A stretch of 64,000 bases of DNA from Rebecca billardiae RCC1528 (lineage: Eukaryota > Protista > Haptophyta). The notes beneath the pieces were generated by a model. The model ran no database searches and was not told the DNA's origin. It was given only the letters and a program-made list of their open reading frames with translations. Made by a program: the position numbers and the translations under genes. Location: the NCBI GenBank assembly GCA_965240325.2, contig OZ251231.1, positions 682,001 to 746,000 of the forward strand, written 5' to 3'. Below, one piece after another: positions 8,165 through 58,680 of this stretch. Position 1 is the first letter of the stretch; every line of letters starts with the position of its first letter.

Positions 8165-8210
8165 TTTTAAAAATCCCCTTTATAACGGGCTCCGGGTGAT
8201 CAGACTGGCG
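8165..8210 (+). repeat. Dispersed repeat B (TTAAA(A/T)TCCCCTTTATAACGGGCTCCGGGTGATCAGACTGGCG), copy 1
   Basis: Near-identical copies at 31389, 45173 and 58631 (minus strand). Confidence 0.9.
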
Positions 8211-13470: not shown

Positions 13471-14033
13471 CTCGCCGGCGCCGCGGCCGCCGGCAGCGGC
13501 GGCGCCGCTGGCGCCGCCGCCGGAGAGGGGCCGCCGAGGGCCAAGAGGGGCGGGAGGGGCGGCAAGGAGCCGCGGCCTGGAATGACCTGCGCGAGCACGG
13601 GTGTCGCCGATGGCGACGGCTGTCGCCGGCTGTCGCCGATGGCGACGGCGCCGGTGCGAATGGCAGCACGGACGGTCGCGGGCGCGTCGTCCATGCTGGC
13701 TTCAGCGCGGCTTCAGCCCGCTTCAGCGGGCTTCAGCGGGCGTGAAGCCGCGCTGAAGCCGCACTGCGCGTCGCTTCAACATTGTGCTGTATTGTTGCCC
13801 CAAACCGTATCTGGCTTCACCCTCTACTAGTAGTATAGAACGTATACCGTACGGTGTGCTAACCGTGCAGGCACAAAACTGCCTCGTCGTCGGTATTACG
13901 GTAGTACAGTACAGTAGCACAGTACTAGATGTACTGTACCATGATGATACATATACAAATACGACAATACAGTATGACAGGATCTGCGCCGGGCCGCCGC
14001 CGACTGCACACGCGGTACAGTAGCCAAGTCAGC

Positions 14034-17000
14034 ATGGCCACGTCGTTCGGCTTGGGCGGTCCGCCTCGTTGGGGCGCCTGCGTGCTGAGCGCGCTCATTG
14101 GCGTGGTCGTCGGCGTGCAGCTCAGGCCTACGGTGGAATGCCAGTGCGGCGGCGCCACGCGCCGCCTCGACGAGGATGCAGGTGGCATGTCGGGCGGGGC
14201 CAAACTCAAAGGCGGCGCTGTGCAGACGGTGAACCGCCTCCTCGGCCTCACGCCGGGCGTTCTCAGCGAGATCTCGCGCGAGCTCGACGCGCTCGGGCTG
14301 CAGCCGCACGAGCGCGAGGCCCCGCCACTCACCATCCCAAGCGGCCGCGCGCTTCCAAAGATGGGCCACGTCGGCCCGGAGAACGGCACGGACCCGTACC
14401 CGTCGCGGCTGCTGCAGGAGGCGTTTGTGCGCTTCACCACGCTCCTCTTCGACCACGGGCTGCTGCCCATCGCGCCGCGCAACGGCACCAGCGGCATCGA
14501 CGGCTGGGGCGTCGGGCGCGGCAGCCCGTCTCTCCACAGCATTCTGAGCCGCGCGGGCATGGAGCTCTTCCTGACCGAGCGCGCGGGCGCGCTCGTCGAG
14601 CCGGGCAGCACGTGCCTGTTCTGGGACGACACGAGCTACTTGGAGCTCGTGCCCGGCTGCGACCCGCGGCGCGCGTGGGTGCTCACCTTCGCGCCCGTGC
14701 GCCCGGACGCGGCGGTCGCTCTCGAGGTCGTCCGCGGCGCGCACAACACGCTTCGAGGCGATCTGGCGGCGATCTCGAACGCGAGCATGGCCGGCGCCGC
14801 GCTCGGCCTGTTCGACGCCGTGCTGTGCGTGCAGGTGTTCGAGCACATCATGCACCCGTTCGCCGCCGCGCGCGCGCTCACGCACCTGCTCAAGCCGGGC
14901 GGCCGCGTCTTCTTCACCGCGCCGTTCGTCGAGCGCTTCCACGGCGTCCCTACCGACGGCTTCAGGTACACGGTCGACGGCGCGGCGGCCATGTTTGAGG
15001 ACGCGGGGCTGAGCGTGGAGGAGCGGTGGCGGATAGGCGACACGCTGCTCGCCAACGCGTTCACGCTGGGCTTCGGCGTGGGCGACTTCGAGTCCAAGCG
15101 CCTCCACGAGCGGCTGCTCATCCCCGACAACCTGGGCCCCGCCGAGCGGCTGAGCCAGCGCGGCCAGATGAACAGCCTGGCCGAGCGCAACTGGGATGGC
15201 ACCCCCGCAGTGCCGCTCGACCAGGACCCGAGGCACTGGCTGTACATCTCGAGCGCGCTGGTCGTGCGTGCGCCGTACCGAGACATGCAGTCGGAGCTCG
15301 CGGCGCTGCGCATTCCGACCAGCCCGCACCGCGTACAGCGCGCTCGGCGCGCCAACTCGAGCGGCTCGCCTGGCGCTGGGCTCGCTGTCGTCGCGATGAT
15401 GCCGCGCGACAGCGCGCAGCGTGCTGCGTTCGCTCATCGCGCGCTGGCAGCGTCGGAGCAGATCTCCGAGGTGCTCTTCGCCGACGCGTGCTTCCTACTC
15501 CGCGACCCTGCCGAGCACGAGCTCGTCCTCGCCGAGCGCACCTTCTCGCACCTGCGCTGCCCGCAATGGATCCGCATGGCGTACAAGCGCGTCGGCAACT
15601 GGGTCGCACAGCTTCGCGCGCTCGAGATTGCCGCGCGGCGCTCAGGGCCCACGATCCTGGTAGAAGAGGATGTGCACTTCTCTGCGGCGCACTTCGCCCT
15701 GTACATCCCCCGTGTGGTGCGCATGGCAAGTGATGCAGACCTCGTCTACCTCGGCAGCTGCTACGAGCTCACCAAGCTGGTGAAGCAGTGCGTGCAGGCA
15801 GCCCCTGGTCTGTTTGCCTTCCGACCGGTGCATGCAACGTGCGGCCATGGCTGGCTGGTGAGCCCAGCCGGCGCGCTCGCCGCCATCCGTGCGTTTCGCG
15901 GCTACCTTGACACGTTCCACGCCGTCACCAAGCTCGTGCAGCCGCCGCGCGACTGCTTGCGCGCGTACGCTTCCGAAGACGGGCTCGTGGCCAAGTCTGG
16001 CGACAAGGAGTTCCAGTTCATATGGGAGTGGTACGTGCAGGTCGGTGCGGACTGGATGATGACGAGCGCGCACCGGCGCGGGCAGATCAGCGCCCTGCAC
16101 GTCTGGCCGCAGCTCGTGGTCCAGGCAAGCGGCACAAGGCGCGTCAACAGGTGGTTCCACTATCAGAGCGACAGCGGAGGAGTCATCCACTTGCCGGCTG
16201 GCTGCAAGTTCGACGACACAGCAGCCAACTGGCGTGCGATGCTCACTTATGGCAAGACTGTCTGCCCGAAGCAGTTCAATGTAGAGGCCAACTTCGACCT
16301 TCATACGACCACGAAACCACCAGCCCTGGGCCAGCTCGTGCCGTGCACTGCCAACTGCTTCCGCCGCGGCCGGCTGGCGCTGAGCCCCTGGCAGCAGCGT
16401 TGCCAGCCTGCCTCTGACGCAGCTGCACTGGCTGGCGGGCTCGTCGACTGGGTCGCAGGGGTCGGCACCAAGCCACCTACGCGTCTGCACGAGCCGATGC
16501 AGGCCATCGCCATCGTGTCCCATGAAGATGCTGCCTCTCCTGCATGCACCTCCTTTGAGCGCTTTCTCGAGCTCGAGGTCCCAACGTACCTGGTCTTCAG
16601 CAGTGCAGTGCTTGCCAAACCAGGCTGTGCAGACTTCCTGCAGCTCTTGCGCCAGCAGGCCCCGCCATCCGTGCAGCTGCTTGTGACAGACGGCACTCCG
16701 ACCGGCGCTGTGCATGCACGGGGGCTCGTACTTGCACTGCTCGATGCGCAGGGCGTGAGCGCTCCAGAGTTCCTCGTTTACTCTGACTGCGAGGTCGACG
16801 TGCTCCCGCCGCAGGAGCAGCGCGCACAGTGCAGTTATGCAGGCGCTGTGCGTGAGCTGGTCACTGAGCTCGTGACGAGGCGTGCCATCGTGGCTGCTGG
16901 CGGACCCCAACACTACGTTCGAGACAGCCAAGACCAGTGCCCTGGCACACACAGGCAGAGGGACGCACGGGCGAGGCTCAAGCCCATCGCCATCATGCCA

Positions 17001-17489
17001 ATCGTCGTCACGACGCGGAATCACAAACGACGGGAGTACACGATAGAGAATGCGGACTTGCCTGCAGCATCGTCGAAAAAGATCCTCCTCCCTATGCGCC
17101 GCCACCGCAGGCCTGCCTTGGACTTTGGGCGCATAAGAGAGACTGGCTTGTGGTGGACAGCCCCCATCATTGCGTACGACCTCCGCAAGTACCACGAGCT
17201 GCACATGCGCTTACTGCCCAGTCGTCATCCCCCTGTGGATGAGCATGGGACGCGGACAGCTGGTGGTAGCATCATCACCATCGAGCAGACACCATCGCCA
17301 GCACGCTGTCAAGGCATGAACTGCAATCAGCAGCTGAATACGTCGCGCTTTCACACTACGTCTTCGGCAGAGTCGTCCGGCCAGGTTGCCAATGCAGCGC
17401 AGCGCATGCTCTGCAAGACTGGCTGGACATCCTTGTTGACAGAAGAGCTGTTCTTCTTGTTGCACAGGCGCCGTGATGCCACTGCTTAA
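14034..17489 (+). CDS. SAM-dependent methyltransferase fused to a GT25-like glycosyltransferase domain, with N-terminal membrane anchor
   Basis: TM segment ACVLSALIGVVVGV; FDAVLCVQVFEH..LLKPGGRVFFTAPF..HGVPTDGFRYT (Methyltransf_11-like); TILVEEDVHF, DLVYLGSC and CGHGWLVSPAGA (GT25-like). Likely start is ATG 14034 within ORF 13929-17489. Confidence 0.75.
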   Translation: MATSFGLGGPPRWGACVLSALIGVVVGVQLRPTVECQCGGATRRLDEDAGGMSGGAKLKGGAVQTVNRLLGLTPGVLSEISRELDALGLQPHEREAPPLTIPSGRALPKMGHVGPENGTDPYPSRLLQEAFVRFTTLLFDHGLLPIAPRNGTSGIDGWGVGRGSPSLHSILSRAGMELFLTERAGALVEPGSTCLFWDDTSYLELVPGCDPRRAWVLTFAPVRPDAAVALEVVRGAHNTLRGDLAAISNASMAGAALGLFDAVLCVQVFEHIMHPFAAARALTHLLKPGGRVFFTAPFVERFHGVPTDGFRYTVDGAAAMFEDAGLSVEERWRIGDTLLANAFTLGFGVGDFESKRLHERLLIPDNLGPAERLSQRGQMNSLAERNWDGTPAVPLDQDPRHWLYISSALVVRAPYRDMQSELAALRIPTSPHRVQRARRANSSGSPGAGLAVVAMMPRDSAQRAAFAHRALAASEQISEVLFADACFLLRDPAEHELVLAERTFSHLRCPQWIRMAYKRVGNWVAQLRALEIAARRSGPTILVEEDVHFSAAHFALYIPRVVRMASDADLVYLGSCYELTKLVKQCVQAAPGLFAFRPVHATCGHGWLVSPAGALAAIRAFRGYLDTFHAVTKLVQPPRDCLRAYASEDGLVAKSGDKEFQFIWEWYVQVGADWMMTSAHRRGQISALHVWPQLVVQASGTRRVNRWFHYQSDSGGVIHLPAGCKFDDTAANWRAMLTYGKTVCPKQFNVEANFDLHTTTKPPALGQLVPCTANCFRRGRLALSPWQQRCQPASDAAALAGGLVDWVAGVGTKPPTRLHEPMQAIAIVSHEDAASPACTSFERFLELEVPTYLVFSSAVLAKPGCADFLQLLRQQAPPSVQLLVTDGTPTGAVHARGLVLALLDAQGVSAPEFLVYSDCEVDVLPPQEQRAQCSYAGAVRELVTELVTRRAIVAAGGPQHYVRDSQDQCPGTHRQRDARARLKPIAIMPIVVTTRNHKRREYTIENADLPAASSKKILLPMRRHRRPALDFGRIRETGLWWTAPIIAYDLRKYHELHMRLLPSRHPPVDEHGTRTAGGSIITIEQTPSPARCQGMNCNQQLNTSRFHTTSSAESSGQVANAAQRMLCKTGWTSLLTEELFFLLHRRRDATA

Positions 17490-23099: not shown

Positions 23100-24109
23100 A
23101 GTTTTCCCTGAGCGCCGGGCGGCGGCAGCGGCGAGGGCGAGTACTCCGCTGGCGGGGCGCGCACGGGGCACAGCGCTGCGGGCGCGGATGTGCCCGCAGA
23201 GCCGGCGCGCGCGGACGGGCTGTTGCGGGAGAGTACTCGGCGCCCTCCTGCGCCGCGCGTCTTGCGCCACGCCTCTTTCGCCTCGGCTCAGGGCAGCGCG
23301 CACATTCGCGCCGCGTCAACGGGCCAGCCTTGCCTGCGCCGCAGCCGACCGCGCGCGCGCCGTGCGCGGCGTGGTCGGGAAGGAACGGGCGCTGCCGCGG
23401 GGCGAGGTGGCGACACCATGCGCGCACGCCATGCCGCCCCGCCACGCCTTGACGAGCGTGTCGTCGGTCCGTTTGCATGCCTCTTTGACTTGTCACAAAT
23501 GGTGTGCACGGCCGTGCGGTCGTGTCACTCGTGACCCTTGTCGGGACGATCATTGAGACGCAGAACAGTGCCAGACGGGCGCGCGGGCTACTCTTACATG
23601 GATATTCATCACCGTGTGGTCAAGTAGAGGTGCTGGATGCGACGCTTTCCTCGCGCTGATGCTCTTTCATCATCTTCTTCGAGCTCAGGTCCGTGGCCGT
23701 TGGCACGACAAGTGATCAGCACTCGTCAACAGCTGTGCAGATCTATTTCCGTGCCCTTTCGCGGCATCACGGGGCGGCATGGCGTGCGCGCATGGTGTCG
23801 CCACCTCGCCCCGCGGCAGCGCCCGTTCCTTCCCGACCACGCCGCGCACGGCGCGCGCGCGGTCGGCTGCGGCGCAGGCAAGGCTGGCCTTGACGCGGCG
23901 CGAATGTGCGCGCTGCCCTGAGCCGAGGCGAAAGAGGCGTGGCGCAAGACGCGCGGCGCAGGAGGGCGCCGAGTACTCTCCCGCAACAGCCCGTCCGCGC
24001 GCGCCGGCTCTGCGGGCACATCCGCGCCCGCAGCGCTGTGCCCCGTGCGCGCCCCGCCAGCGGAGTACTCGCCCTCGCCGCTGCCGCCGCCCGGCGCTCA
24101 GGGAAAACT
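23100..24109. mobile_element. Foldback element, ~340-bp TIRs, possible CAA target duplication
   Basis: Arms 23100-23441 and 23770-24109 are near-perfect reverse complements (AGTTTTCCCTGAGC...GCTCAGGGAAAACT); CAA lies on both flanks. Confidence 0.75.
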
Positions 24110-24211
24110 CAAAGACCACCTTGGTCTGCCGCCTGCCGCGCCGCGCCGGTGGCGGACGCCGTCGGACTCCACTCCATCACATGGCCGGAGGGCCGGCGGG
24201 GCAGCCCTGCC

Positions 24212-27200
24212 ATGCGCGGTCGCGCGCTGCTATGGCTGCTGGCATGCGCGGCGTGGCTTGCTGCGCGCGTGCACGCTCCTTCTGCTCCCGCCAAGGCGCC
24301 CGACGCATCGCCTGAGCGCGACCCGGGCCCCCTGGGCGGCGCAGACAGCTTCCTGCTCAGCGCATCGCAGCGCGCGGCCTTGACGGCGCCATTGCCGCCC
24401 GTCATCTTTGCCAAGACGCACAAGACCGCCTCGTCGACGGTGCTCAACATCCTGCATCGTGCGGCCGACCTGCGCAACCTCAGTGTCATGCTGCCTCGAG
24501 TCGCCAGCGCGGGTGGACCGCGCGGGGCTCCTGCTCTGTCTGCGCTCGGATGGCCGCACGCGTTCCCTGGCTCGGGGTTCGAGCCGCCCTCGCACCAATT
24601 CGACGTGATCCTGTACCACGCGGTGCTAGACGCGTCGCGCATGCGCGCGTACGCGCGCGTGGTGCCGCCTCCACGCCGCGCGCTCATCGTGACGATCGTG
24701 CGCGAGCCAGTCGCCGCAGCTGAGAGCGCGTTCGCCTTCTTCGAAGCCCGGCGGTGCTGCGGTGCCGATGTGCCCGAGCACCTGCGCTGGCTTGAAGGCT
24801 TGCGCGCAGTGCGCTCCGTCGCCGAGGCCACGTTCCGCAACCCGCAGGCGCACGATCTGGGCTGGTACGCGCGGCACAACGGCTCGACCGCGCGCGACGG
24901 CGACGCGCGCGCCGTGCGAGAGTGGCTGCGCGCCGAGATTGAGGCCGAGATTGACCTGGTTCTGCTGACTGAGCGGCTCGAGGACGGGCTGCTCGTGCTG
25001 CGCGAGGCGCTGGGTGGGCCAGCCGCGCTCGCGCTCGAGGAGCTCGCGCACATCCGGCTCAAGGCGCGCGCCGTGAAGCCGCGCGCGCTCAGTGCCACTC
25101 CCGACGCACGCGCACGGCTGCTGCGAGCCAACAGCGTCGATGCGGCCCTGCACGCGCACTTCGCGGCGGCGTTCGAGCGCCGGTGGGCGCAGGCGCCCGC
25201 GCGCGTGCACCGCGAGCGTGAGGCCCTCAGTCAGCTGCTCGCGCGCCTCGAGCGCGCGTGCGCGCGCGCACCGGCGTGGTCGCGCCAGCTGCGCTCGGCG
25301 TCACGGCGTGGCGGCGCGCACGATGCCTCGCTCGCGGGCGCGCGCGCTGCGCCGCCGATCTGCGGGCACGAGCGCTGGGTTTGGATCGCACCCGGGGCGC
25401 CGGACGCCGCCGTCGACAGCGCGCGCGTGCGCAGTCACGCCCGTCTTCCTCCAGCTGGCGCGGCCGCACGCCCGCCGCCGGCGGACTCGGGGACTCGTGG
25501 CGCACCGGTCTGTCCCCTGGCCGTCCGCACCGACGAGTGGCCCTACAGGCAGCACCTGCTCAGCCGCGCGCTCGCTCGTCGCGAGCTCGAGCCCGTGCAC
25601 CTTGGCGGTGCAGCACGGCGCGAGCGGGTGGGCAGCGCGAGCGAGCACACGCGCGCGTGCGCGTACGCGCGGCCGCCCACGATGGCGATGGCGCGCTCTG
25701 GCGCGGACGCCGCCGTCGGCGCGGCGTCACTGCCGAGTGCACTGAATGAGTCCGCGCTGCCGCCCTTCACCGCGCTGCTGCTGGGATACGACGGCGCGCG
25801 GCTGCGGCTCAACGCCCTGCGCGTGCTCGGCGAGCTGCGCGCGCACCGCGCGTGCGTGCGCGCGCTGCTGGTCTGGAACGGCGGGGTGGCCGAGCTGCGC
25901 GCCGCCCTCGCGGCGGCAGGCAGCTCTGAGCCGCAGCTGCGCGCGGGCGCGCCCGGCGACGCGCCGCTCGAGCTGATCGTCGAGCCGCGCAACTCGCTGA
26001 ACAACCGGTACATGCACGGCGCGCGCGTGCCCACGCCCGTGTGCGTGATCGTCGACGACGACCTACGGCCGCAGTTTGCGCGAGAGCTCGCCTCGGCCGT
26101 GCTCGCGCACTGGGCGGCGCACCGCGAGCAGCTGGTGGGCGTGAGCGCGCGCGTCGTGCGCCCGCCCGGCGGGTACGTGCCGGTCAGTCGGGCGCGCGAC
26201 GTGCGCGAGGCGAACGCGCTGCTCCCGCACGTGCTCGCGGTGCCCAAAGCGCTGCTGTCCGCTTACTCGGCGCCGGCGAACGCGGCAGAGCGCGCGTGGG
26301 TCGACGCGGACGCGGCGCACTGCGACGACCTGCTGCTCAACTACGTGCAGCATGCGCGGCGGGGCGCGAGCGAGCACGCGCGGGCCGCGCTGCTCGCGGC
26401 GCCCGAGCACCTCATTCTGGACCTCAGCCTCGGCGGCGGGATCTCCGGTGGGCGCGGGGACAACCGCACGCGCGAGCGCGCCGCGTGCGCCGCGCACCTG
26501 CACGCGCGGCTGCGGCCGGGCGGGCCGCTGCCGCCCGTGGAGCTCGTGGGTGTGGCGTGGTCGTTCGTGGCGGCCATGCTGCCGCGCGAGCTCGGCTTCA
26601 TGCGCCGAGTGGCGCGCGCGGCAGGCGCGCCGGCGGTCGTCCGACGGCACTACGCGGACGGCGCGCGAGCGCCCGAGCGCGTGCGCGGCACACCGGAGCT
26701 CACGCCGAGCTCGGACGCGGACGGCCTCGGCGCGCCATGCGCTTCGTGCCCCGACCTTCTCGGCGTGGGCCTGCAGAAGGGCGGCACCACCGCCGTGCTC
26801 GCCACGCTTGGGGCGACGCTCGACGCGCTGCGTGCGCGTGGCGTGGCGCGCGAGGGCGCGCGCGAAGGCGCGCGCGAGGGTGCCGCGCCTGCGGTAATCG
26901 CTCAGAACGACATCCCGCAGACGTGGCGCTGGTGGGCACGGGGCCGAGTCGACAGGCAGGACGCAGCCTCCGTCTGCGCGGCGCTCGCCACCGTGCCCAG
27001 CCGAGACCCGCGCCGCCTCATCCCGCTGCAGCGCGCGACACCCCCCGACGGCGCAAGCCGCGGCGGCGGCGCGGCGGCGCACGAGGACGGTGCTGCGGCG
27101 ACGGCGACGGCGTCCGATCCGAGCGGCTCGTTCGCGCGGGGCGCGCCGCTTGTGCTCGCCAAGGAAGCGAGCCTCACGCCGTACGCGCGCACCCTGCTCG

Positions 27201-30200
27201 CCGCGGCCGGCCCTGCCGCCTGCCCCGCGCACACGCGCTTCTATCTTGTCGTCCGCGCGCCGCTCGCAACCGCGCGCGCGCTTCTGCGAAGCGCAGGGTT
27301 GGAGCACCTGGCTCGGAGCTCGCTGCGCGAGGCGCTGGCCGAGCCCGACGCCGAGCGCGGCGCAGGGCTGGCTGCTCGCGGCGGCGAGGCCGCTCGCGCT
27401 GGCGAGGCTGCTCGCGAGGCCGTGTGGCGCGCCATCCTCCTCCGCTCCGCAGGCTACTCCGGTTACTCCGGTTTCTCCGAGACGGTGTCGCGCGCGCGCG
27501 CTGCGCGCACTCGGCTGCCCTCTGCCGTCCCCGCAGCGAGCGAGCGCAACCGCTCGGCACAGCCCGGTACGCCCAGCGGGAGCGGCAGCGGCGGCACGGT
27601 CATTGGCCAGCTGCTCTCACTCTGGGCACGCTTCGCAGGGCATGAGTACGCCGCTGCTCGGCGCGTCGCCGAGCGCGCCGCGGCCGACGCTGCGGCCGAC
27701 GCGCCGCGCGCGCGCACGGCGGCGCGGGCCTATCAGACAGATGGCGACGGCGGCGCGGCTGGCGCAGGCAGCGCGCGGCGCATACGGCTGGGCGCGATAC
27801 GGTACGAGGACTTTGTGCGCGACCCTCTGCGCGCAGCCGGCGCGCTGCTCGAGGAGCTCGGGCTCACGACGAGCGCGCACATGCGCGAGCTCGAGCGCTC
27901 GGAGCACGGCTCGGCCGTGCGAGCGTTTGCCCAGACGCGCTGGCAGCGCCGAGCGCGCGCGCCGGCGGCCACAGCCGCCGTGTGCGCCGGCGTCGGCGAC
28001 GGCGTCGGCGGCGGCGCGTGCTTCGAGCGCGCGCAGTGCGCGGCGGCGCTCGAGCTGCCCGCCGTGCGCCGCGCGGCTGCGCTGTGGGGCTACGAGCTGC
28101 ACGCCCGCAACTGCACCGAGCGCGCTCTCACCGGGAGCTGGCGCGGTCCCTTATCGGCGGCTCGGCTGCGGCTGACAGCGAGCCCGCCGCCGCCGGCCTC
28201 GCCGCCGCCAGCGCCGCCGGCTCCGCCGCCGCCCGCGCTGGGCTTCACGCCCCTCCGGTTCGCGTGCCCGCCGCCCGCCGCCGCCGCTCTCGCCGCCTCC
28301 GCGCGCCCGAGCCTCGCGGTGCTCACAGTTGTCAGCAGCTCGCGCGCGGCTCACGTCGCCGAGCTCGCGGCGCATTACATGGAGGAGGGCGCGGCGCATC
28401 TGTTCGTGGTGGACACCTCCGGGCCGTGGCAGCGCGGCGTGCGGGACGCGGTGGCGGCGCTGCCTCGCGGCTGGGCGACGCGCCTGCCCGCCGCGACGCT
28501 GCTCGGCGGGCGCGACGCCGCCGCCTCCGGCAGCGGCGCGCCCTCAGCTGGCACAGACGCGCTCACAGGCGAGCTGATAGCGACGACGCTGCTTCGCAAT
28601 CGTCACGCGCGCGCCGACGATGGCGGCGGCGGCGGCGGCGCGTGGCAGGCGCACCGCTACGACGCGCGCGTGCAGCGCAGGCTGCTCAACCGCGCGCTCG
28701 GCGTCGCGCGGCGCACGCCGCCGCCCGGCGCCGCGCCTGACGGCCGCTTCGAGTGGGTGCTTCCGATCGACTCCGACGAATACGTCACGTCGCGAGGGTG
28801 TGCGGGCACGCCTCTGGCCGATCTGCTCGGGGGGCCTCTGCGCACGTGCGCGCTCGTGTATCTGCCGTGGCTGGCGTTCTCGTGGGGCGGGCACGAGGCC
28901 GAGCCGTGCGGCGCGGAGCGTGACGCGGCGGAGTGGCGCTGGGCGCTGCGCGCGGCGGAGGCCGCGCGGCCGCGCGACGGTGAGATCGTTTCGCTCGACA
29001 GCGCGGCGGCGCGCGCGTCGGCCAGCGCCGGCCTTCTCAAGGACAAGTTCGCGCCCAAGCTGTCGGGGCTGAGCAAGTACGCGGTGCGGATGGACGCGGT
29101 GCTCGCGCTCGACCTGCACAGGCCGAGGCGCATGGCGCCGCACGCGGGCGGCGGGCAGCACGCGAGCTGCCTGATGGTCGGGCCAGCGGCGGAGCAGCGC
29201 AGCGCGCGCGGCCCTCCGACCGCCGATGGCGGCGGCGCGGACGCCGACGCGGATGCCGACGCAGACGCGGACGCGGACGCCGACGCCGACGCCGGCGCGG
29301 ACGAGGGTGGGCACGGCTCGAGGGCGCAGTGGCCGACGGCGTGGCGCATCGAGCACCCCTGGCCGCACGCGCACGCCGCGGCGCTCAACGTCTCCCTCAG
29401 CGAGGCGGCGGTGCCTGGACTCGTCCTCGCCAGCCACCACATGCGCGTGAGCTCGTGGGCGCAGTGGCGGGTCAAGACCGAGCCAGACCGCTACTACGCG
29501 GTCTGGTACGATCGGTTCACGGATGACGACGCGGCAGTCGACGCGGTGGCGAACCGGCGCGACGTGCACGACAGCTTCCTGCGCGATGTGCGCTCGCCGC
29601 GCGTGCGGCCGCGCGCGCGGCCCGCCACCGCGCGCCCGCCCGCCGCCAGCCAGCTGCACGCGGCGCACACGTGCGAGCCGGCTGGCGGCGCCGCCGCCGC
29701 GCCGGTCGGCGCCGCTGCCGCTGGGGCGGCGCGCGCGCCGGGCTGGCGGAGCTCGCTCCTCCGACAACCCTCCGTGTGCGCGGCCGCCGTCGCTTCGAGC
29801 ACGGCCCCAGCGACGGCCGTCGCTTCGAGCACGGCCCCAGCGACGGCCTCTGCGCGCGAGGCGGCACGCGCGCTCCGGCCAGCGCTCAAGCTGAGCCGTA
29901 TCCGCGGCGCGCCGGTGCGCGTGCTGAGCGCGGGCCTCGACGGCGCCGGATCGAGCGCGCTGTTCCTCGCGCTGTGCGCCGCGGGCGTGCCGAGCGTGCG
30001 CGGCGCCGAGGCGTGCCACGCTGGGCCTGAGGCGCTGCGCCGGCACCTGGCCCTGCTGGAGCTCTGGGACGAGCTCAGCGCGTGCGCGCGCTGCGCTGCG
30101 GCGCGCCGCGCGCGAGCTGGCGCCAGTACCGCTGACGCGGGCGCCTATGCTGGCGGATGCAACGGCACGGTGGGCCGGAGGGTGCTCGGGCTCGCAGCCG

Positions 30201-30979
30201 CGCCGCGCACGCTCGCGTGCGAGCGCCACGACTGGCTGCGTCGGCTGCACGCAGCCCTGCGCGCCGTCGTCCTCTCTGGCATCCACGCACTCCTCGATTC
30301 GCCCTACCCAGAGCTGCTGCCAGAGCTGCGCGCGCTCGCGCCGCGCGCGATCGTCGCTCACGCCGTGCGCGCGCCCAGTGAGTGGGCGCGGCGGCTCGTG
30401 CCGCACTCGCCGCCCGAGCTCGTCTGCAGGCGGCAGCGCGACACGCTCGCGCGCGCGCGCGGCGGCCGGCGCTCGCCGTGGCACATCGTCGCGTGCGTCG
30501 TGGCGGGCAAGGCGGGCGCACTTGGGGCAAGCTTCGCGCCGTGGCGCTTCGGGCGGCGCCCGCGAGCCGAGCCGCAAGCGCACGTTGGCGGCGCGGGCCT
30601 GGCAGCACGCGCACGACCAGAGCCGCTCGGGCTGCACGTGGCCGCGACCTCTGACGCGCTTGACGAGCAGGCGCTCGCACGCGCGTACGCGACGCACGGG
30701 CACCTCGTGCGCACGGCCATCCTCGCGCAGCACGCCCACGCGGCTGGCTCGAGGGCGGTGGCACACGGATACTGGGAGCTGTGCACACGCGACGGCAACA
30801 AGGCGCGGTACGAGCGAATGCGCGCGCAAGCCCTGGCGGGCATGGACGAGGCCTCAGGCTTGAGTCCACAGGTGGTGGGAGGCGTGAGCCTAGCCGCCAA
30901 CGTGTCGTGCGCCGGCATGGAGCTCTTCCTCCACGTGGCGGCCGAAGCGAGCTCGGCATACTTCCAATGCGAGCGATGA
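24212..30979 (+). CDS. Giant multidomain glycan-synthesis protein: Gal-3-O-sulfotransferase + GT64 (EXTL-like) + sulfotransferase + GT2/GT92-like + Sulfotransfer_4-like
   Basis: Signal peptide MRGRALLWLLAC at ATG 24212; FAKTHKTASSTV..IVREP; NSLNNRY..IVDDD..HCDDLLLNY; GVGLQKGGTT..VRAP..RYEDF; EWVLPIDSDEY; RVLSAGLDGAGSSAL..LLDSPY, all in one open frame. Confidence 0.8.
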   Translation: MRGRALLWLLACAAWLAARVHAPSAPAKAPDASPERDPGPLGGADSFLLSASQRAALTAPLPPVIFAKTHKTASSTVLNILHRAADLRNLSVMLPRVASAGGPRGAPALSALGWPHAFPGSGFEPPSHQFDVILYHAVLDASRMRAYARVVPPPRRALIVTIVREPVAAAESAFAFFEARRCCGADVPEHLRWLEGLRAVRSVAEATFRNPQAHDLGWYARHNGSTARDGDARAVREWLRAEIEAEIDLVLLTERLEDGLLVLREALGGPAALALEELAHIRLKARAVKPRALSATPDARARLLRANSVDAALHAHFAAAFERRWAQAPARVHREREALSQLLARLERACARAPAWSRQLRSASRRGGAHDASLAGARAAPPICGHERWVWIAPGAPDAAVDSARVRSHARLPPAGAAARPPPADSGTRGAPVCPLAVRTDEWPYRQHLLSRALARRELEPVHLGGAARRERVGSASEHTRACAYARPPTMAMARSGADAAVGAASLPSALNESALPPFTALLLGYDGARLRLNALRVLGELRAHRACVRALLVWNGGVAELRAALAAAGSSEPQLRAGAPGDAPLELIVEPRNSLNNRYMHGARVPTPVCVIVDDDLRPQFARELASAVLAHWAAHREQLVGVSARVVRPPGGYVPVSRARDVREANALLPHVLAVPKALLSAYSAPANAAERAWVDADAAHCDDLLLNYVQHARRGASEHARAALLAAPEHLILDLSLGGGISGGRGDNRTRERAACAAHLHARLRPGGPLPPVELVGVAWSFVAAMLPRELGFMRRVARAAGAPAVVRRHYADGARAPERVRGTPELTPSSDADGLGAPCASCPDLLGVGLQKGGTTAVLATLGATLDALRARGVAREGAREGAREGAAPAVIAQNDIPQTWRWWARGRVDRQDAASVCAALATVPSRDPRRLIPLQRATPPDGASRGGGAAAHEDGAAATATASDPSGSFARGAPLVLAKEASLTPYARTLLAAAGPAACPAHTRFYLVVRAPLATARALLRSAGLEHLARSSLREALAEPDAERGAGLAARGGEAARAGEAAREAVWRAILLRSAGYSGYSGFSETVSRARAARTRLPSAVPAASERNRSAQPGTPSGSGSGGTVIGQLLSLWARFAGHEYAAARRVAERAAADAAADAPRARTAARAYQTDGDGGAAGAGSARRIRLGAIRYEDFVRDPLRAAGALLEELGLTTSAHMRELERSEHGSAVRAFAQTRWQRRARAPAATAAVCAGVGDGVGGGACFERAQCAAALELPAVRRAAALWGYELHARNCTERALTGSWRGPLSAARLRLTASPPPPASPPPAPPAPPPPALGFTPLRFACPPPAAAALAASARPSLAVLTVVSSSRAAHVAELAAHYMEEGAAHLFVVDTSGPWQRGVRDAVAALPRGWATRLPAATLLGGRDAAASGSGAPSAGTDALTGELIATTLLRNRHARADDGGGGGGAWQAHRYDARVQRRLLNRALGVARRTPPPGAAPDGRFEWVLPIDSDEYVTSRGCAGTPLADLLGGPLRTCALVYLPWLAFSWGGHEAEPCGAERDAAEWRWALRAAEAARPRDGEIVSLDSAAARASASAGLLKDKFAPKLSGLSKYAVRMDAVLALDLHRPRRMAPHAGGGQHASCLMVGPAAEQRSARGPPTADGGGADADADADADADADADADAGADEGGHGSRAQWPTAWRIEHPWPHAHAAALNVSLSEAAVPGLVLASHHMRVSSWAQWRVKTEPDRYYAVWYDRFTDDDAAVDAVANRRDVHDSFLRDVRSPRVRPRARPATARPPAASQLHAAHTCEPAGGAAAAPVGAAAAGAARAPGWRSSLLRQPSVCAAAVASSTAPATAVASSTAPATASAREAARALRPALKLSRIRGAPVRVLSAGLDGAGSSALFLALCAAGVPSVRGAEACHAGPEALRRHLALLELWDELSACARCAAARRARAGASTADAGAYAGGCNGTVGRRVLGLAAAPRTLACERHDWLRRLHAALRAVVLSGIHALLDSPYPELLPELRALAPRAIVAHAVRAPSEWARRLVPHSPPELVCRRQRDTLARARGGRRSPWHIVACVVAGKAGALGASFAPWRFGRRPRAEPQAHVGGAGLAARARPEPLGLHVAATSDALDEQALARAYATHGHLVRTAILAQHAHAAGSRAVAHGYWELCTRDGNKARYERMRAQALAGMDEASGLSPQVVGGVSLAANVSCAGMELFLHVAAEASSAYFQCER

Positions 30980-31389: not shown

Positions 31390-31426
31390 TCCCCTTTATA
31401 AGGGGCTCTGGGTGATCAGACTGGCG
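31389..31426 (+). repeat. Dispersed repeat B, copy 2
   Basis: ttcccctttataaggggctctgggtgatcagactggcg. Confidence 0.85.
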
Positions 31427-33122: not shown

Positions 33123-34487
33123 TTAGTTAGTACTTAGTACTTGGGCGGTCTGCTTGAGCGCCCCACGTGTGCCGTCGTCGGCCAGCAGCACCTCTGCGCG
33201 CAGCCGCGCCGGCGGCCCCGCAAATGGCGTCGTGTGCATCGGCTGGGTGCCATCCTCGTGCAGCAATGCCGTCAGGTGGGCGGCGTGAGGTTGATAGAAT
33301 GTGTTGAGCTCTGCCTCGATGCGCGGCCCGAAGGGCGTGCGCTGCCCCTGAGTCGTCCGGTTGGCCGCTGCGATCGTGCCGTTCGGCTCGCCACATGCAC
33401 CAGAGGCCCAGGTCATTTCTGAGCCGATGAAGGCCGCAAGATCGCGCAGGGTGCGCTCAGGCGCGGCGAGGTAGCCGACAAAGGAGACGAGCGAGACCTG
33501 GTCTGGCGCGAACGCACCAAGCAGAGCGCGCAGCTGGGGCGCATACACTCCCGCAGCGATCGGGCTGTGCCGGCCGCCACACGAAGTGTTGTAGAGCGCG
33601 TCGGCACCCGCCAGGTTGAGCCCCCGTGCCGTCGCGCATGCACGCGTCGCGTTCAGCCATTCCGCAGCCCACGCGTCCAGCCCCTCCTGACCCTGAGCCG
33701 CGTGGGCAGTGGACTCGGGGGCGTCGCCAAAGGTGGGGCCATGCAGCTTGCCCTTGCGCCACCACATGTCGTACACTGAGCGCAGCCGCGAGACTGGGTT
33801 GCGTACGATCGCCACAAGCCGTACGCGCGAGAGCGGAGACGGCATGCCTGGCTCCGGTCCTATTGGCAGAGCCGCATATAGCTCTCTCGCGCGCGCCGGG
33901 AAATTTGGATCGCGCATGTAGTTCGGCGTGGCGTCGATCGCCAGGCTGGGAGCGCTGCGCTGCGGTGGCTGCACGCGCCCGTGTGCGCTTTGAGTTTGGC
34001 GACAAGCGCCACCTCTCTCCGCTTCGGCAGGCCCCGCCTCTGCGGCTGCCGTCCGCTCGCTCAGCTCGCAGCGGGGGAATAGGTGCGCATACTCGCGCGC
34101 GTGCCTCGCAGTAAAGCGACGCTCGCGGTCAAAGAAGTGCACCTCCTTGCGATGCCCGTGAGCCCTGCGCGCCCTCGAGCCCCCGTGGGCGTGGGCGCCA
34201 CGAGCACTCGGCGCATGCCCCATGGCTGGCGCAACGCCGTCAATGTGCGTGATGATGTCGGTCCACAGCGACGACGTGGCGCATTTTTGGCAGCCTACCA
34301 GTAGGAGTGTCGGCAGCATGAACCCGTCGATGCACAAAGGGTGCCAGGTGTGCGTGGGACCAGTTCTAGTAGCGACGACAGCGCTGGACGGCATGTTGCC
34401 AGCCTGCCACCCCAGCTGGCGGGGGGCCGCGGCGGCGCGACGGCCGACGGGCCCCCCGCTCCAAACAAGCAAAATGGCGGCCGCCAA
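33123..34487 (-). CDS. Heparan-sulfate 3-O/N-sulfotransferase-like PAPS sulfotransferase (start uncertain; first in-frame ATG at 34394)
   Basis: LLVGCQKCATSSL (5'-PSB), KEVHFFD, DATPNY, IVRNPVSRLRS (3'-PB). Confidence 0.8.
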   Translation of the reverse strand: MAAAILLVWSGGPVGRRAAAAPRQLGWQAGNMPSSAVVATRTGPTHTWHPLCIDGFMLPTLLLVGCQKCATSSLWTDIITHIDGVAPAMGHAPSARGAHAHGGSRARRAHGHRKEVHFFDRERRFTARHAREYAHLFPRCELSERTAAAEAGPAEAERGGACRQTQSAHGRVQPPQRSAPSLAIDATPNYMRDPNFPARARELYAALPIGPEPGMPSPLSRVRLVAIVRNPVSRLRSVYDMWWRKGKLHGPTFGDAPESTAHAAQGQEGLDAWAAEWLNATRACATARGLNLAGADALYNTSCGGRHSPIAAGVYAPQLRALLGAFAPDQVSLVSFVGYLAAPERTLRDLAAFIGSEMTWASGACGEPNGTIAAANRTTQGQRTPFGPRIEAELNTFYQPHAAHLTALLHEDGTQPMHTTPFAGPPARLRAEVLLADDGTRGALKQTAQVLSTN

Positions 34488-34505
34488 GATGAAGGGTGAG
34501 CGCCC

Positions 34506-35795
34506 ATGAGGTCGTCACGTTCGGCAGTCGCCGCTGTGGTATGGGCAACTCTCGCAGCCAGCCGTGCTAGGGGAGAGCATACACCGGGCGCGTCCCCGTG
34601 CGTAGGAGGGCGCCTACTTCCGACCGTCCTCATTGTTGGTGCGCAGAAGTGTGGCACGAGCTCACTCAAGCGCGACCTGCTCATGCACGCGCGCGGTGTC
34701 ATGGTCCCCCTCACTTCAAAGCTCAAACACAAGAGCTGCGGCCGGGCTGACTGCGACTTTCATCGGTTTCGGCCGCGGCTGCTCCAGCGCGAGCTCCACT
34801 TCTTGGACAACGGCACGGGTGAGCTCAGTCGTGGCGCAGTTGGGTACGCATCGTACTACCCACTGTGTCCGGCGGATGGGCAGCCGCAGTTCGCACTTGA
34901 CAAGACGCCAAACTACATGCGACATGTGGGCTTTTCCGCCGCGGCGGCAGCGCTGTACGGCCGTGTCCCGGCCGTCGGGCTCGAAGCTACGCTCGATCGC
35001 GTCCGGCTAATCGTCTCTGTGCGCCATCCTGTCCAGCGCCTCCGCTCATTCTATGACATGCGAACATTCCGTGACAGGCGAATGCGGACCAAGCCGAGCG
35101 GGGGAGGCGATGCAGGCGCGTCGGTGCGCAATTTTGAGCTGAGCGAGTGGGCAATCGCGCTCCTCAATGCTACCATGCGATGCGCCGCTTCGCACGCCCT
35201 CGACGTGTCCGGACCCCTCGGGCTGCATGGCTCGGAGTGCGCCGCGCGCCGCGGGCCCGGACGAGAGCTCGAGACGGGCATCTATGCCCCTCAGCTGCGC
35301 GAGATGCTGGCGTCATTCCCCGCTCGGCAGCTGGCTCTGGTCTCCTTTGCGGGGTACGTGTGCGCCCCGCAGCGCACGGTGTGTGACCTTGCGCGCTTCA
35401 TCGGCAGCAGCGCACCGGCGCTGGGCAGTGCCTGCGGAGATGGCCCTTCCACCGGCGCTCGTGCCGTCACACCCCCGCCTGCGCACGCCGAGCGCACCGG
35501 GCAGGGGAGCGACATGCCCCTTGGGCGCGAAAATGCGTCCTCCTTCGCCGCGGCGAACCCTGCTCGAAGGCGACACGCGTTCGGCGCTGCAGCTCGCACC
35601 GCGCTTGACGCATTCTACAAGCCACATGCCGCCCACCTGACGGCACTGCTGCGCGAGGATGGCACCCAGCCGATGCTCACGACGCCATTTGCGGGGCCGC
35701 CGGCGCGGCTGCGCGCAGAGGTGCTGCTGGCCGACGACGGCGCAGCTGAAGCCATGGCGGAAGCGTGTAGCAGCATCAGAGCGCGGCTGCAATAA
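34506..35795 (+). CDS. Heparan-sulfate 3-O/N-sulfotransferase-like PAPS sulfotransferase
   Basis: Signal-like N-terminus; IVGAQKCGTSSL, RELHFLD, DKTPNY, VRHPVQRLRS. Confidence 0.85.
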   Translation: MRSSRSAVAAVVWATLAASRARGEHTPGASPCVGGRLLPTVLIVGAQKCGTSSLKRDLLMHARGVMVPLTSKLKHKSCGRADCDFHRFRPRLLQRELHFLDNGTGELSRGAVGYASYYPLCPADGQPQFALDKTPNYMRHVGFSAAAAALYGRVPAVGLEATLDRVRLIVSVRHPVQRLRSFYDMRTFRDRRMRTKPSGGGDAGASVRNFELSEWAIALLNATMRCAASHALDVSGPLGLHGSECAARRGPGRELETGIYAPQLREMLASFPARQLALVSFAGYVCAPQRTVCDLARFIGSSAPALGSACGDGPSTGARAVTPPPAHAERTGQGSDMPLGRENASSFAAANPARRRHAFGAAARTALDAFYKPHAAHLTALLREDGTQPMLTTPFAGPPARLRAEVLLADDGAAEAMAEACSSIRARLQ

Positions 35796-45172: not shown

Positions 45173-45222
45173 TTTTAAATTCCCCTTTATAACGGTCTCC
45201 GGGTGATCAGACTGGCGGCCGA
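45173..45222 (+). repeat. Dispersed repeat B, copy 3
   Basis: ttttaaattcccctttataacggtctccgggtgatcagactggcggccga. Confidence 0.9.
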
Positions 45223-45369
45223 AGCCTCCAGCCCTACCCTGGCCAGCCCCCAACCAACCACCACCCTCACGGTCATACCAAGGAGACTTAAAAAATTGGG
45301 TTATTTGTAAGACCCCTTGGTCATACGGCCTCATGAAGATAGTAGCAATCAACATAGTAGTAGGCGGTG

Positions 45370-47250
45370 ATGAACAGGCACGGCGAGAACCCCATCGAGT
45401 GTGATCACGCCGGCTGCACCAAGGTGCCCCACTTCGGCATGACGGGCGACGCGCACGCCAGCCTGTGCGCTGCGCACAAGCTGGCCGGCATGGTCGACGT
45501 GAAGCACCCCAAGTGTGATCACGTGGGCTGCACCACGGTGCCTTCGTTCGGCATGCCGGGCGACGCGCGCGCCAGCCGGTGCGCTGAGCACAAGCTGGCG
45601 GGCATGGTCAACGCGAAGCACCCTGGATGTGATCACGTCGGCTGCAACAAGCAGCCTTCGTTCGGCATGCCGGGCGACGCGCGCGGCAGCCGGTGCGCTG
45701 CGCACAAGCTGGCCAGCATGGTCGACATGAAGCACCCCAAGTGTGATCACGCCGGCTCCACCAAGGTGCCTTCGTTCGGAATGCCGGGCGACGCGCGCGC
45801 CAGCCGGTGCGCTGCGCACAAGCTGGCCGGCATGGTCGACGTGAAGCACCCCAAGTGTGATCACGTGGGCTGCACCACGGTGCCTTCGTTCGGCATGCCG
45901 GGCGACGCGTGCGCCAGCCGGTGCGCTGAGCACAAGCTGGCCGGCATGGTCGACGTGAAGAACCCCAAGTGTTATCACGTCGGCTGCACCAAGCGGCCTT
46001 CGTTCGGCATGCCGGGCGACGCGCGCGCCAGCCGGTGCGCTGAGCACAAGCTGGCCGGCATGGTCGACGTGGTGAGCCGCAAGTGTGATCACGTCGGCTG
46101 CACCAAGATGCCTCACTTCGGCATGCCGGGCGACGCGCGCGCCAGCCGGTGCGCTGAGCACAAGCTGGCCGACATGGTCGACGTGAAGAACCCCAAGTGT
46201 GATCACGTCGGCTGCACCAAGCGGCCTTCGTTCGGCATGCCGGGCGACGCGCGCGCCAGCCGGTGCGCTGAGCACAAGCTGGCCGGCATGGTCGACGTGA
46301 AGCACCCCACGTGTGATCACGTAGGCTGCACCAAGGTGCCTTCGTTCGGCATGCCAGGCGACGCGCGCGCCAGCCGGTGCGCTGAGCACAAGCTGGCCGG
46401 CATGGTCGACGTGCAGCACCCCAAGTGTGATCACGCCAGCTGCACCAAGCGGCCTTCGTTCGGCATGCCGGGCGATGCGCGCGCCAGCCGGTGCGCTGCG
46501 CACAAGCTGGCCGGCATGGTCGACGTGAAGAGCCGCAAGTGTGATCACATCGGCTGCACCAAGATGCCTCACTTCGGCATGCCAGGCGACGCGCGCGCCA
46601 GCCGGTGCGCTGAGCACAAGCTGGCCGGCATGGTCGACGTGAAGCACCCCACGTGTGATCACGCCGGCTGCACCACGGTGCCTTCGTTCGGCATGCCGGG
46701 CGACGCGCGCGTCAGCCGGTGTGCTGCGCACAAGCTTGCCGGCATGGTTAACAGCCAGCTCGCCGTCCACAAGCGCAGGCTGGAGCATGGCACCGGCGAC
46801 CAGGGCACGCGTGCTGCGAAGCGACAGCACACGCACGCGAGCCGCATTGCCGCTTTATCGGACGCTGCGCCGCAGCTTTCCTCACCGCCGCCGCTGGTCG
46901 AAGTCAGCATCGTCCGCTGGCGCTCGCCAGATGGCAAGATCCATTCGGTTGACGACGGGGTGGTCGATGATGGTGCCTGGGCCCTGGACGAGCGGCATCA
47001 GCGTGGCAATGCCGATGATGCCGCCATCTGGGCTGCCCCTGGCATGAGTGGCAGCTACGACCAGGGACTACCAGCAGGCATCAACACTACCGCTGCGCCA
47101 GCACTACCATCATCCTCGATTACGATGGCGGCGGTCCGAGCACGACTCCAGCAGCCACGGCCACAGGTCGTACCCGTGGACGTGGTGATGGCGAGGAGGG
47201 CCCGGGTCGATGCTGGTGACTGCAGCGGCACAGCAGCGCGTATATACTAG
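45370..47250 (+). CDS. EsV-1-7-type cysteine-rich repeat protein with 12 repeats of 38 aa
   Basis: Repeat CDHxGCTKxPSFGMPGDARASRCAEHKLAGMVDVKxPK (114-bp unit) from ~45400 to ~46750. Confidence 0.85.
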   Translation: MNRHGENPIECDHAGCTKVPHFGMTGDAHASLCAAHKLAGMVDVKHPKCDHVGCTTVPSFGMPGDARASRCAEHKLAGMVNAKHPGCDHVGCNKQPSFGMPGDARGSRCAAHKLASMVDMKHPKCDHAGSTKVPSFGMPGDARASRCAAHKLAGMVDVKHPKCDHVGCTTVPSFGMPGDACASRCAEHKLAGMVDVKNPKCYHVGCTKRPSFGMPGDARASRCAEHKLAGMVDVVSRKCDHVGCTKMPHFGMPGDARASRCAEHKLADMVDVKNPKCDHVGCTKRPSFGMPGDARASRCAEHKLAGMVDVKHPTCDHVGCTKVPSFGMPGDARASRCAEHKLAGMVDVQHPKCDHASCTKRPSFGMPGDARASRCAAHKLAGMVDVKSRKCDHIGCTKMPHFGMPGDARASRCAEHKLAGMVDVKHPTCDHAGCTTVPSFGMPGDARVSRCAAHKLAGMVNSQLAVHKRRLEHGTGDQGTRAAKRQHTHASRIAALSDAAPQLSSPPPLVEVSIVRWRSPDGKIHSVDDGVVDDGAWALDERHQRGNADDAAIWAAPGMSGSYDQGLPAGINTTAAPALPSSSITMAAVRARLQQPRPQVVPVDVVMARRARVDAGDCSGTAARIY

Positions 47251-51794: not shown

Positions 51795-52310
51795 AACCGC
51801 CTCTGACCTTGGGCAGCAGCCATACATGCAGGCCAGCATGAGCGGCGGGGTGGCATCAGAGCCGGCCCCGGCCCGCAAACGCAAACAGCCGGACGCCCCG
51901 GCCCACACAGCTGATGCGCCAGCAAACCCTGCTCCGGGCCACAGAACCCTGCCGCCGGCTTTGAGGCCGACACGCCACACTGGGGCACATATCACCTGAG
52001 GGCCGGGCCTTCTGTGTGATAAGCTACCCCAGTCATGCCGCTTGATACACACCTTCCCCAACTGACAGTGGGGCTCTACATTCCCTACTACATCCTCATC
52101 CTGTCGGCGCGCTGTCGCATCGGCGCCCAGTCGGCGAGTTCGGACGACGACGTTTTGTGGACGACGGTGGGGCGAGGACGACGGGCGCTGGCGCGCCGCG
52201 AGGCGGCCGCAGCCCTCATCCAGGCCTCGCAGGCGGACGGCTGAACGAATTTTTCCGGCGGCGCTACCATCGGCGACGGCTTCATGGGCGGTGACAGTTG
52301 GCGGGCGTCA

Positions 52311-52358
52311 ATCTCGCCTGCCTGAGCTGTGTGCGTCTCTTATTCTTAGTAAACTGTA
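52311..52358 (+). repeat. Dispersed repeat A copy at the 5' end of the pyruvyltransferase gene
   Basis: Identical to 31172-31219. Confidence 0.9.
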
Positions 52359-58630: not shown

Positions 58631-58680
58631 TCGGCCGCCAGCCTGATCACCCGGAGCCCGTTATAAAGGGGAATTTAAAA
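58631..58680 (-). repeat. Dispersed repeat B, copy 4 (minus strand)
   Basis: tcggccgccagcctgatcacccggagcccgttataaaggggaatttaaaa. Confidence 0.9.

Follow-up and report, generated by a model that had tools for sequence, protein, structure and literature searches.

Does a long open reading frame (ORF) in the nuclear DNA of a haptophyte encode one protein that both extends and sulfates a glycan, or is it several genes, or no gene at all? The locus (positions 24212 to 30979, forward strand) lies in a stretch of 64,000 nt from Rebecca billardiae RCC1528 (contig OZ251231.1, positions 682,001 to 746,000; "the window" below). An earlier note on this DNA had described it as a chain of alternating sulfotransferase (ST) and glycosyltransferase (GT) domains. 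How cells fix glycan sequence and sulfation pattern without a template is an open question, and animals distribute the steps of glycan synthesis over many separate Golgi enzymes. The reading favored here, and probably the correct one, is an intron-less nuclear gene of a GC-rich haptophyte, encoding one secretory protein of 2,255 residues. The domain order ST-GT-ST-GT-ST given in the earlier note is the one found by Pfam matches, homologues, and fold matching: a Gal-3-O-sulfotransferase, a GT64 glycosyltransferase, a probable Sulfotransfer_3/1-type sulfotransferase, a glycosyltransferase of the Glyco_tranf_2_4/GT92 neighborhood, and a Sulfotransfer_4-like domain that is likely non-catalytic.

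The enclosing ORF runs from 23906 to 30979, and its first Met is at 24212. Since long spurious ORFs are common in DNA of 75-78% G+C, the composition of this region, the frame was tested against chance. It has no in-frame stops in 2,255 codons, as previously noted, vs. 10-36 in each of the other five frames. Shuffled controls gave a mean of 27 stops (mononucleotide) or 22 (codon-position composition kept), with a minimum of 11 in 500 shuffles. Between about 24150 and 30980, G+C is higher at third than at second codon positions in one unchanging phase, a pattern that is lost in both flanks. A codon-usage log-odds score was trained on the clear domains and three other window genes. In almost all linkers and low-complexity inserts it is above zero in frame 0 and below zero in the remaining frames, and on either side of the ORF it falls below zero in every frame. 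In linker 1, for example, it is 0.22 in the ORF frame vs. -0.26 and -0.36 in the others, with no stops vs. 1.3 expected. The linkers have a G+C content of 78-83% vs. 43-65% in the flanks, and coding-type codon usage. The strong tandem arrays within the ORF have periods of 12, 18, 24, and 30 nt, every one a multiple of 3.

The first two domains are those proposed earlier, a Gal-3-O-sulfotransferase followed by a GT64 domain with an intact DDD, and both exceed their Pfam gathering scores. Domain 1 scores 116 bits (cut-off 27) and covers positions 61-339 of the 402 in the model. Its motifs for the donor 3′-phosphoadenosine 5′-phosphosulfate (PAPS) are intact: the 5′-phosphosulfate loop FAKTHKTASS (KTHKTxSS) and the 3′-phosphate motif TIVREPVAAAES (R...S; VREPVAAAES). 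In an alignment (A5) with six metagenomic relatives that stand alone and are 29-39% identical to it, all 28 invariant columns are kept. It is like Gal3ST1-4 and other PF06990 members in sequence (E 2e-33) and in both PAPS motifs; those are single-domain proteins, whereas domain 1 stands at the N-terminus of a chain of five domains. Domain 2 scores 34.7 bits (cut-off 21.3) over positions 17-179 of the 245 in the model; its metal/UDP motif, DDD, is at residues 615-617 (26054-26062). Aligned with the GT64 half of human EXT2, it has FTAxxLxYD, VWN, NxLNNR, DDD, and CDDxxxNY in register, its DDD and CDDLLLNY pairing with the DDD and CEDIAMNF of EXT2; the E value against the Protein Data Bank (PDB) is weak (0.17).

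Domain 4 has a DXD motif, DSDEY (residues 1520-1524; 28769-28783), a C-terminal HHxRxSSW motif, and two low-complexity inserts, (DA)n among them. Its own match to Glyco_tranf_2_4 is sub-threshold (E 0.023; 15.6 bits vs. a cut-off of 27.5). An exhaustive HMMER search with residues 1000-2199 found 56 homologues, the best of which (E 1e-26 to 1e-22, matching residues 1352-1800) score above the Glyco_tranf_2_4 threshold (E 1e-13 to 1e-17, 51-64 bits). The identity of domain 4 is secured by these homologue scores. GT92 is weak in the homologues and above threshold in P0011 only; Atlas features of domain 4 point to GT92 (0.95, 189 shared). All 38 invariant columns of the homologue alignment (A3) are kept, including D169, D171, and E172 of the D-x-D-E motif. 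The GT2/GT92-like domain with DSDEY is thus confirmed by way of the relatives, and the Pro-rich linker before it is seen in the translation. Two of these, P0011 and P0045, contain a tandem pair of GT2_4-like domains.

Domain 3 is interrupted by two long low-complexity inserts. Its candidate motifs are, along the chain, a GLQKGGTT loop (residues 852-859, with QKGGTT at 855) and VVRAPLATARALLRS (1013-1027), followed by a C-terminal Pfam match (1171-1220); the VVRAP...S motif is placed between the loop and the C-terminal match, where a putative 3′-phosphate motif would be expected. Its language-model features are nearest to sulfotransferase clusters (0.94, 24 of 30 matches), with just 135-140 shared features. 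In an hhalign comparison, the QKGGTT loop pairs with the QKCGTSS loop of neighboring sulfotransferase genes, at a weak E of 0.066. BLASTP of domain 3 against the neighboring sulfotransferase gave nothing significant. On these features, domain 3 is probably a sulfotransferase. Of the earlier assignment as a PAPS sulfotransferase, the motifs and the C-terminal Sulfotransfer_3 match stand; the match is under the Pfam threshold, so the assignment is probable only.

Domain 5 can be recognized mainly by its fold and its relatives. Its own Sulfotransfer_4 match is sub-threshold (E 0.046, 14 bits vs. 22.8), and relatives of it score above the PF17784 threshold. An AlphaFold2 model from a 19-sequence alignment has a predicted local distance difference test score (pLDDT) of 72 and a predicted template modeling score of 0.73. 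The top 19 PDB matches to this model are all of Sulfotransfer_4 type (Schistosoma sulfotransferases, SgdX2, and Cpz8), with Z 10.1-11.6 over 158-179 aligned residues; the next match has Z 8.5. A shape search of the Atlas with domain 5 returned sulfotransferase clusters only.

The phosphate loop of this domain, GLDGAGSS (residues 1908-1915; 29933-29956), has no Arg; a 3′-phosphate-like motif, VRAPSEWARR, is retained. When the relative P0010 is aligned with the Schistosoma haematobium enzyme, AGLGSSGT falls opposite AGLPRTGT. The consensus of the domain 5 subfamily in the 19-sequence alignment is AGxGTT[AG]T, with three invariant Cys. Together these indicate that the Arg is absent across the whole subfamily, and the possibility that the missing basic residue is a defect private to this gene was rejected. 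The domain 5 loop (AGLDGAGS) and those of the fused proteins P0001, P0003, and P0005, described below, stray further from the consensus. The earlier note had called this a Sulfotransfer_4-like domain with an odd PAPS loop lacking K/R, perhaps inactive, and the loop alignments agree: domain 5 is likely a non-catalytic partner of domain 4. The Cys-rich subfamily itself (alignment A1) is widespread and uncharacterized, with members including P0010, P0012, P0016, P0018, P0019, P0022, P0026, P0034, and P0039, one member being a transcript from the dinoflagellate Polykrikos. Its loop is GxGTT[AG]T, again without the usual Arg, and its 3′-phosphate motif ends in R, not S; its members may depend on some other donor, or may lie outside the sulfotransferases altogether.

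Table 1. Features of the five-domain gene, in window coordinates, with the basis of each assignment (TRF, Tandem Repeats Finder).
Feature	Residues	Position	Strand	Basis
Start codon and predicted signal peptide MRGRALLWLLACAAWLAARVHA		24212..24277	+	14-residue hydrophobic core, V-H-A cleavage-type end
Domain 1, Gal-3-O-sulfotransferase (PF06990)	46-351	24347..25264	+	Pfam E 2.4e-33
Linker 1, Ala/Arg/Pro-rich	352-515	25265..25756	+	No Pfam match
Domain 2, GT64 (PF09258)	516-775 (Pfam match 538-713)	25757..26536	+	Pfam E 1.5e-8
Domain 3, probable PAPS sulfotransferase, Sulfotransfer_3/1 type (PF13469/PF00685)	845-1240	26744..27931	+	Sub-threshold Pfam match, motifs
Pro-rich linker SPPPPASPPPAPPAPPPPAL	1324-1343	28181..28240	+	Translation; tandem array of period 24 nt
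Domain 4, GT-A glycosyltransferase, Glyco_tranf_2_4/GT92 neighborhood (PF13704/PF01697)	1365-1795	28304..29596	+	Homologues
Linker 4	1796-1894	29597..29893	+	Perfect 30-nt in-frame duplication, AVASSTAPAT x2 (TRF period 30, 100% match)
Domain 5, Sulfotransfer_4 fold (PF17784), Cys-rich	1895-2217	29894..30862	+	Fold match, relatives
Stop codon		30977..30979	+	Translation; G+C and coding signal collapse directly 3′ of it

Whether the five domains form one chain can be approached from several sides. By arithmetic, the chance that independent genes would all fall in one frame is (1/3)^4, and the four linkers contain no stops vs. about 3.1 expected. The protein has 17 Met, with Met-free gaps at residues 1224-1390 and 1744-2203; domains 4 and 5 cannot start at an AUG of their own, because the conserved N-terminus of domain 4 (about residue 1365) falls in the first gap and the beginning of domain 5 (1895-2217) in the second. 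The signal peptide reported earlier at the N-terminus was found again in the translation: MRGRALLWLLACAAWLAARVHA is the sole hydrophobic start among the protein's Met (12-residue Kyte-Doolittle mean 2.24; at most 1.56 for the others), and none of the 17 stands internally before a signal sequence. GT64 domains and the Cys-rich domain 5 belong to the secretory pathway, yet a signal sequence follows only the first Met.

The domain 4-5 pair is also fused in three unrelated algal sequences, as the proteins P0001, P0003, and P0005 (635-923 aa), the first and last of which have signal-like N-termini. In contigs from other organisms the pair is recovered by tblastn as a single high-scoring segment pair in one frame (L001, E 2e-37; L003/L004, E 2e-31), so that the junction corresponding to linker 4 is continuous in these relatives. 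The fused proteins have the two domains in the same order, with 25-27% identity over about 700 residues, and share DxDE(F/Y)xxSRxC, EPCG, and HHYRxSSW with the protein described here; their sulfotransferase-like loop is likewise degenerate. They differ in having no domains 1-3, and come from other organisms, on contigs of 57-68% G+C. These observations suggest that the five domains are made as a single product.

If so, the N-terminal signal peptide would take the whole chain into the secretory pathway, where it might be a soluble or weakly retained protein of the Golgi lumen. Two GT-A transferases, one GT64 and the other GT2_4/GT92-like, would be held together and could extend a glycan or glycolipid acceptor by two sugars, while two sulfotransferases, of the Gal-3-O type and probably of the Sulfotransfer_3 type, could sulfate the product on the spot. 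Domain 5 would act as a non-catalytic binding or scaffolding partner of domain 4, and the long flexible linkers would serve as tethers, replacing the multi-protein complexes used by animals. The sequence shows the frame, the domain identities (probable for domain 3), intact motifs, and a conserved domain 4-5 pair; a single product, Golgi location, catalytic activity, reaction order, and the glycan made are all inferred from it. Retaining alpha-hexosaminyl or hexosyl transfer is the activity of the GT64 enzymes characterized to date, and beta-1,4-galactosyl transfer that of GT92 enzymes; at a guess, domain 4 might add a galactose that domain 1 then sulfates.

Two alternatives concern the gene itself. 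The frame might be real and still yield several products, by cleavage in the linkers after entry into the secretory pathway or from transcripts with internal starts, the fusion then serving co-expression or co-targeting. The linkers are indeed long, of low complexity, and probably disordered; relatives of domain 1 and many of those of domains 4 and 5 stand alone; and there are Met just upstream of domain 2 (residues 491/493) and domain 3 (789/797). However, chains started internally would have no signal peptide, neither domain 4 nor domain 5 has a Met that could serve as a start, and the fusion of these two has been kept in other organisms. A TATA-containing element, CCCCTTTATAACGGGCTCCGGG, occurs four times in the window, at 8175-8196 (+), 31391-31412 (+), 45182-45203 (+), and 58650-58671 (-), with 0-2 mismatches (0 copies expected). 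The copies at 31391 and 45182 are directly upstream of same-strand ORFs, the former marking the next gene, and none of the four is upstream of or inside the five-domain gene, again unlike what internal transcription starts would lead one to expect. Several products from one frame are on this evidence unlikely. The other alternative is that there is no functional gene, whether through GC-rich read-through, mis-assembly, or decay of a recent fusion. The 75-78% G+C makes long spurious ORFs common, and there is an overlapping antisense open frame 769 codons long. Domains 3 and 5 have diverged, and no close orthologue was found among about 15 billion proteins. Against this stand a count of stops that none of the 500 shuffles approached, the continuity of codon phase and codon usage, the retention of all invariant residues in domains 1 and 4, repeat periods that respect the frame, and the clean break in composition at the stop codon; an artefact or a dying gene seems very improbable.

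A third alternative accepts the single chain and takes all three sulfotransferase-type domains to be active, the alternating order mirroring synthesis of a repeating glycosaminoglycan-like polymer. The order and domain types are as this would have them, and domain order as reaction order has a precedent in the chlorovirus protein A064R (PMC9614988). Domain 5 also keeps its fold, the invariant SG and P, the three invariant Cys, and the Arg of the 3′-phosphate-like motif. Its GLDGAGSS loop, however, lacks the Arg of AGLPRTGT and is off the GxGTTxT consensus of its own subfamily, and this loop is degenerate in the remaining fused domain 4-5 proteins as well; five regularly alternating active enzymes are unlikely because the subfamily is without this Arg throughout. 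Heparan-type glycosaminoglycan synthesis requires a GT47 glucuronosyltransferase beside GT64, plus an N-deacetylase. In Pfam searches at E up to 1, no GT47/exostosin match was found across the 2,255 residues, and no deacetylase either; there is no other uronyl-transferase, and no sign of processive polymerization. Because GT47 and deacetylase are both missing, a glycosaminoglycan-like product is unsupported, and the earlier proposal of a synthase for such a glycan was not upheld as worded; the second transferase is of the GT2_4/GT92 neighborhood and not a GT47. A five-enzyme assembly line of this kind is accordingly quite unlikely.

A number of observations also weigh against the preferred reading, a single five-domain secretory protein. 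Domain 3 is its weakest assignment: the Sulfotransfer_3 match (E 2e-4, 22.1 bits, cut-off 27) covers only the last 50 model positions, the N-terminal pieces have no match in Pfam, NCBIfam, or PHROGs, a phmmer search of the PDB found none either, and a single-sequence AlphaFold2 model was unusable (pLDDT 38). The codon score is weak in the Pro-rich linker (0.11, tied with one other frame) and in linker 4 (0.08), and is -0.03 for a 35-residue insert within domain 5; some of the low-complexity inserts could be in-frame introns. No relative was found with the five-domain layout or with the junction between domains 1 and 2 or 2 and 3, in word-indexed searches that are weak for a protein of this composition, and the proteins related to domain 1 stand alone, at about 430 aa. 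An exact 28-mer from 28129-28156 was absent from metagenome contigs. Finally, how the protein would be held in the Golgi is unexplained, since its signal peptide is of a cleavable type and it has no membrane anchor: there is no other transmembrane segment, no 19-residue window across the protein reaching a mean of 1.6.

A more far-reaching version of the single-protein reading, which we consider doubtful, is that of a colinear eukaryotic glycan megasynthase, in which the order of domains would be the order of sugar additions and sulfations on one acceptor, so that the product would be a sulfated oligosaccharide of defined structure. It might be built on a polysaccharide of the scales or cell surface, or on the head group of a sulfated glycosphingolipid; the glycolipid is suggested because both domains have characterized relatives that act on glycolipids, cerebroside sulfotransferase in the case of domain 1 and plant glycosyl inositol phosphorylceramide glycosyltransferases in that of domain 2. 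Were this true, haptophytes would hard-wire glycan sequences into multi-domain enzymes, and glycan structure might be read from gene architecture. A protein that naturally tethers a pair of glycosyltransferases to two or three domains of sulfotransferase type would offer a compact, genetically tractable system for asking if glycan structure follows from the closeness and order of the domains. It would also be a source of enzymes for making sulfated oligosaccharides of defined structure, and would open a way into the sulfated glycans of haptophytes, about which very little is known in spite of the large share of marine carbon that these algae fix.

Multi-domain glycan enzymes as such are already known. 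In A064R of the chlorovirus PBCV-1, a single glycan is acted on successively by the domains D1, D2, and D3, and the protein has been called one of the few described proteins with three transferase domains (PMC9614988); A111/114R of the same virus is another such single protein (PMC9614988; PMC7826918). A064R resembles the protein described here in carrying glycosyltransferase domains and a glycan-tailoring transferase on one polypeptide. It is, however, viral, cytosolic, and 638 aa long, with methylation as its tailoring step, whereas the haptophyte protein has five domains of other families in 2,255 aa, tailors by sulfation, and is predicted to be secretory. No sequence relation between the two was seen.

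In the animal heparan sulfate machinery, EXT1, EXT2, and EXTL3 combine GT47 with GT64, and NDST combines a deacetylase with a sulfotransferase. In that system, glycosyltransferase and sulfotransferase domains are not known to share a chain. The EXT and NDST enzymes are Golgi proteins of two domains, each uniting steps in the making of sulfated glycans (PMC9675754). The likeness to them lies in domain 2, whose DDD aligns with that of the EXT2 GT64 half; the differences are that the five-domain protein has neither GT47 nor deacetylase, and that the similarity to EXT2 is weak. Among algae, a sulfotransferase-hydrolase gene fusion has been described in the brown alga Nemacystus decipiens (PMC6418280). 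This too is a gene of an algal sulfated-glycan pathway in which a sulfotransferase domain is joined to another enzyme, but the partner is an alpha/beta hydrolase, there are only two domains, and the lineage is a different one.

No description of the five-domain ST-GT-ST-GT-ST layout was found in the full-text literature, in keeping with the earlier statement that the architecture was not a recognized one; no relevant sulfotransferase-glycosyltransferase fusions were found there, nor are any named in a recent review devoted to polysaccharide sulfotransferases. When the C-terminal 1,200 residues were compared with 1.84 billion cluster representatives, the best relative scored only 108 bits, with 36% identity, and neither an orthologue nor a self-match was present. 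Word-indexed searches with the whole protein, with domain 1, and with a 1,330-aa piece containing domains 1-2 came back blank, their 8,000 candidates probably swamped by low-complexity Ala/Arg/Gly words, so that these blanks carry little weight. Within the window, phmmer and tblastn found no paralogues of the gene.

Other arrangements of the C-terminal domains occur among the relatives. In P0009 (980 aa), a Sulfotransfer_4-like domain precedes a GT2_4-like domain, and in P0021 a Sulfotransfer_4-like domain is joined to PDZ domains. A stand-alone domain 4 relative is found beside an SKN1/KRE6-type glucan synthesis gene in L011/L012 (Logan ERR14847151/ERR14847148; 71-74% G+C), contigs of a different organism that is also very GC-rich, from the same study that yielded the two-domain P0005.

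The gene has ordinary nuclear neighbors (POP1, Aladin, and ankyrin genes), with glycan-tailoring genes nearby. A dedicated gene cluster was considered and rejected, since the two kinds of gene are interspersed. Two head-to-head ORFs 2 kb downstream, at 33126-34514 (-) and 34500-35792 (+), are 45% identical to each other, and both carry a PAPS loop of the VGAQKCGTSSL type; one of them matches Sulfotransfer_3 weakly (E 0.0015), and they are no close kin of domain 3. A polysaccharide pyruvyl transferase domain (E 5e-12) is encoded at 52295-53740 (+), placing another glycan-tailoring gene within 22 kb. Upstream, a 1,186-codon frame at 13929-17486 (+) with clear coding periodicity has a class-I methyltransferase domain at residues 250-335 and about 1,000 residues with no recognized domain. 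The EsV-1-7 motif is best known from an Ectocarpus virus and from brown algae; here, in a haptophyte, a 628-aa ORF at 45364-47247 (+) contains 12 of these cysteine-rich repeats (E 5e-160).

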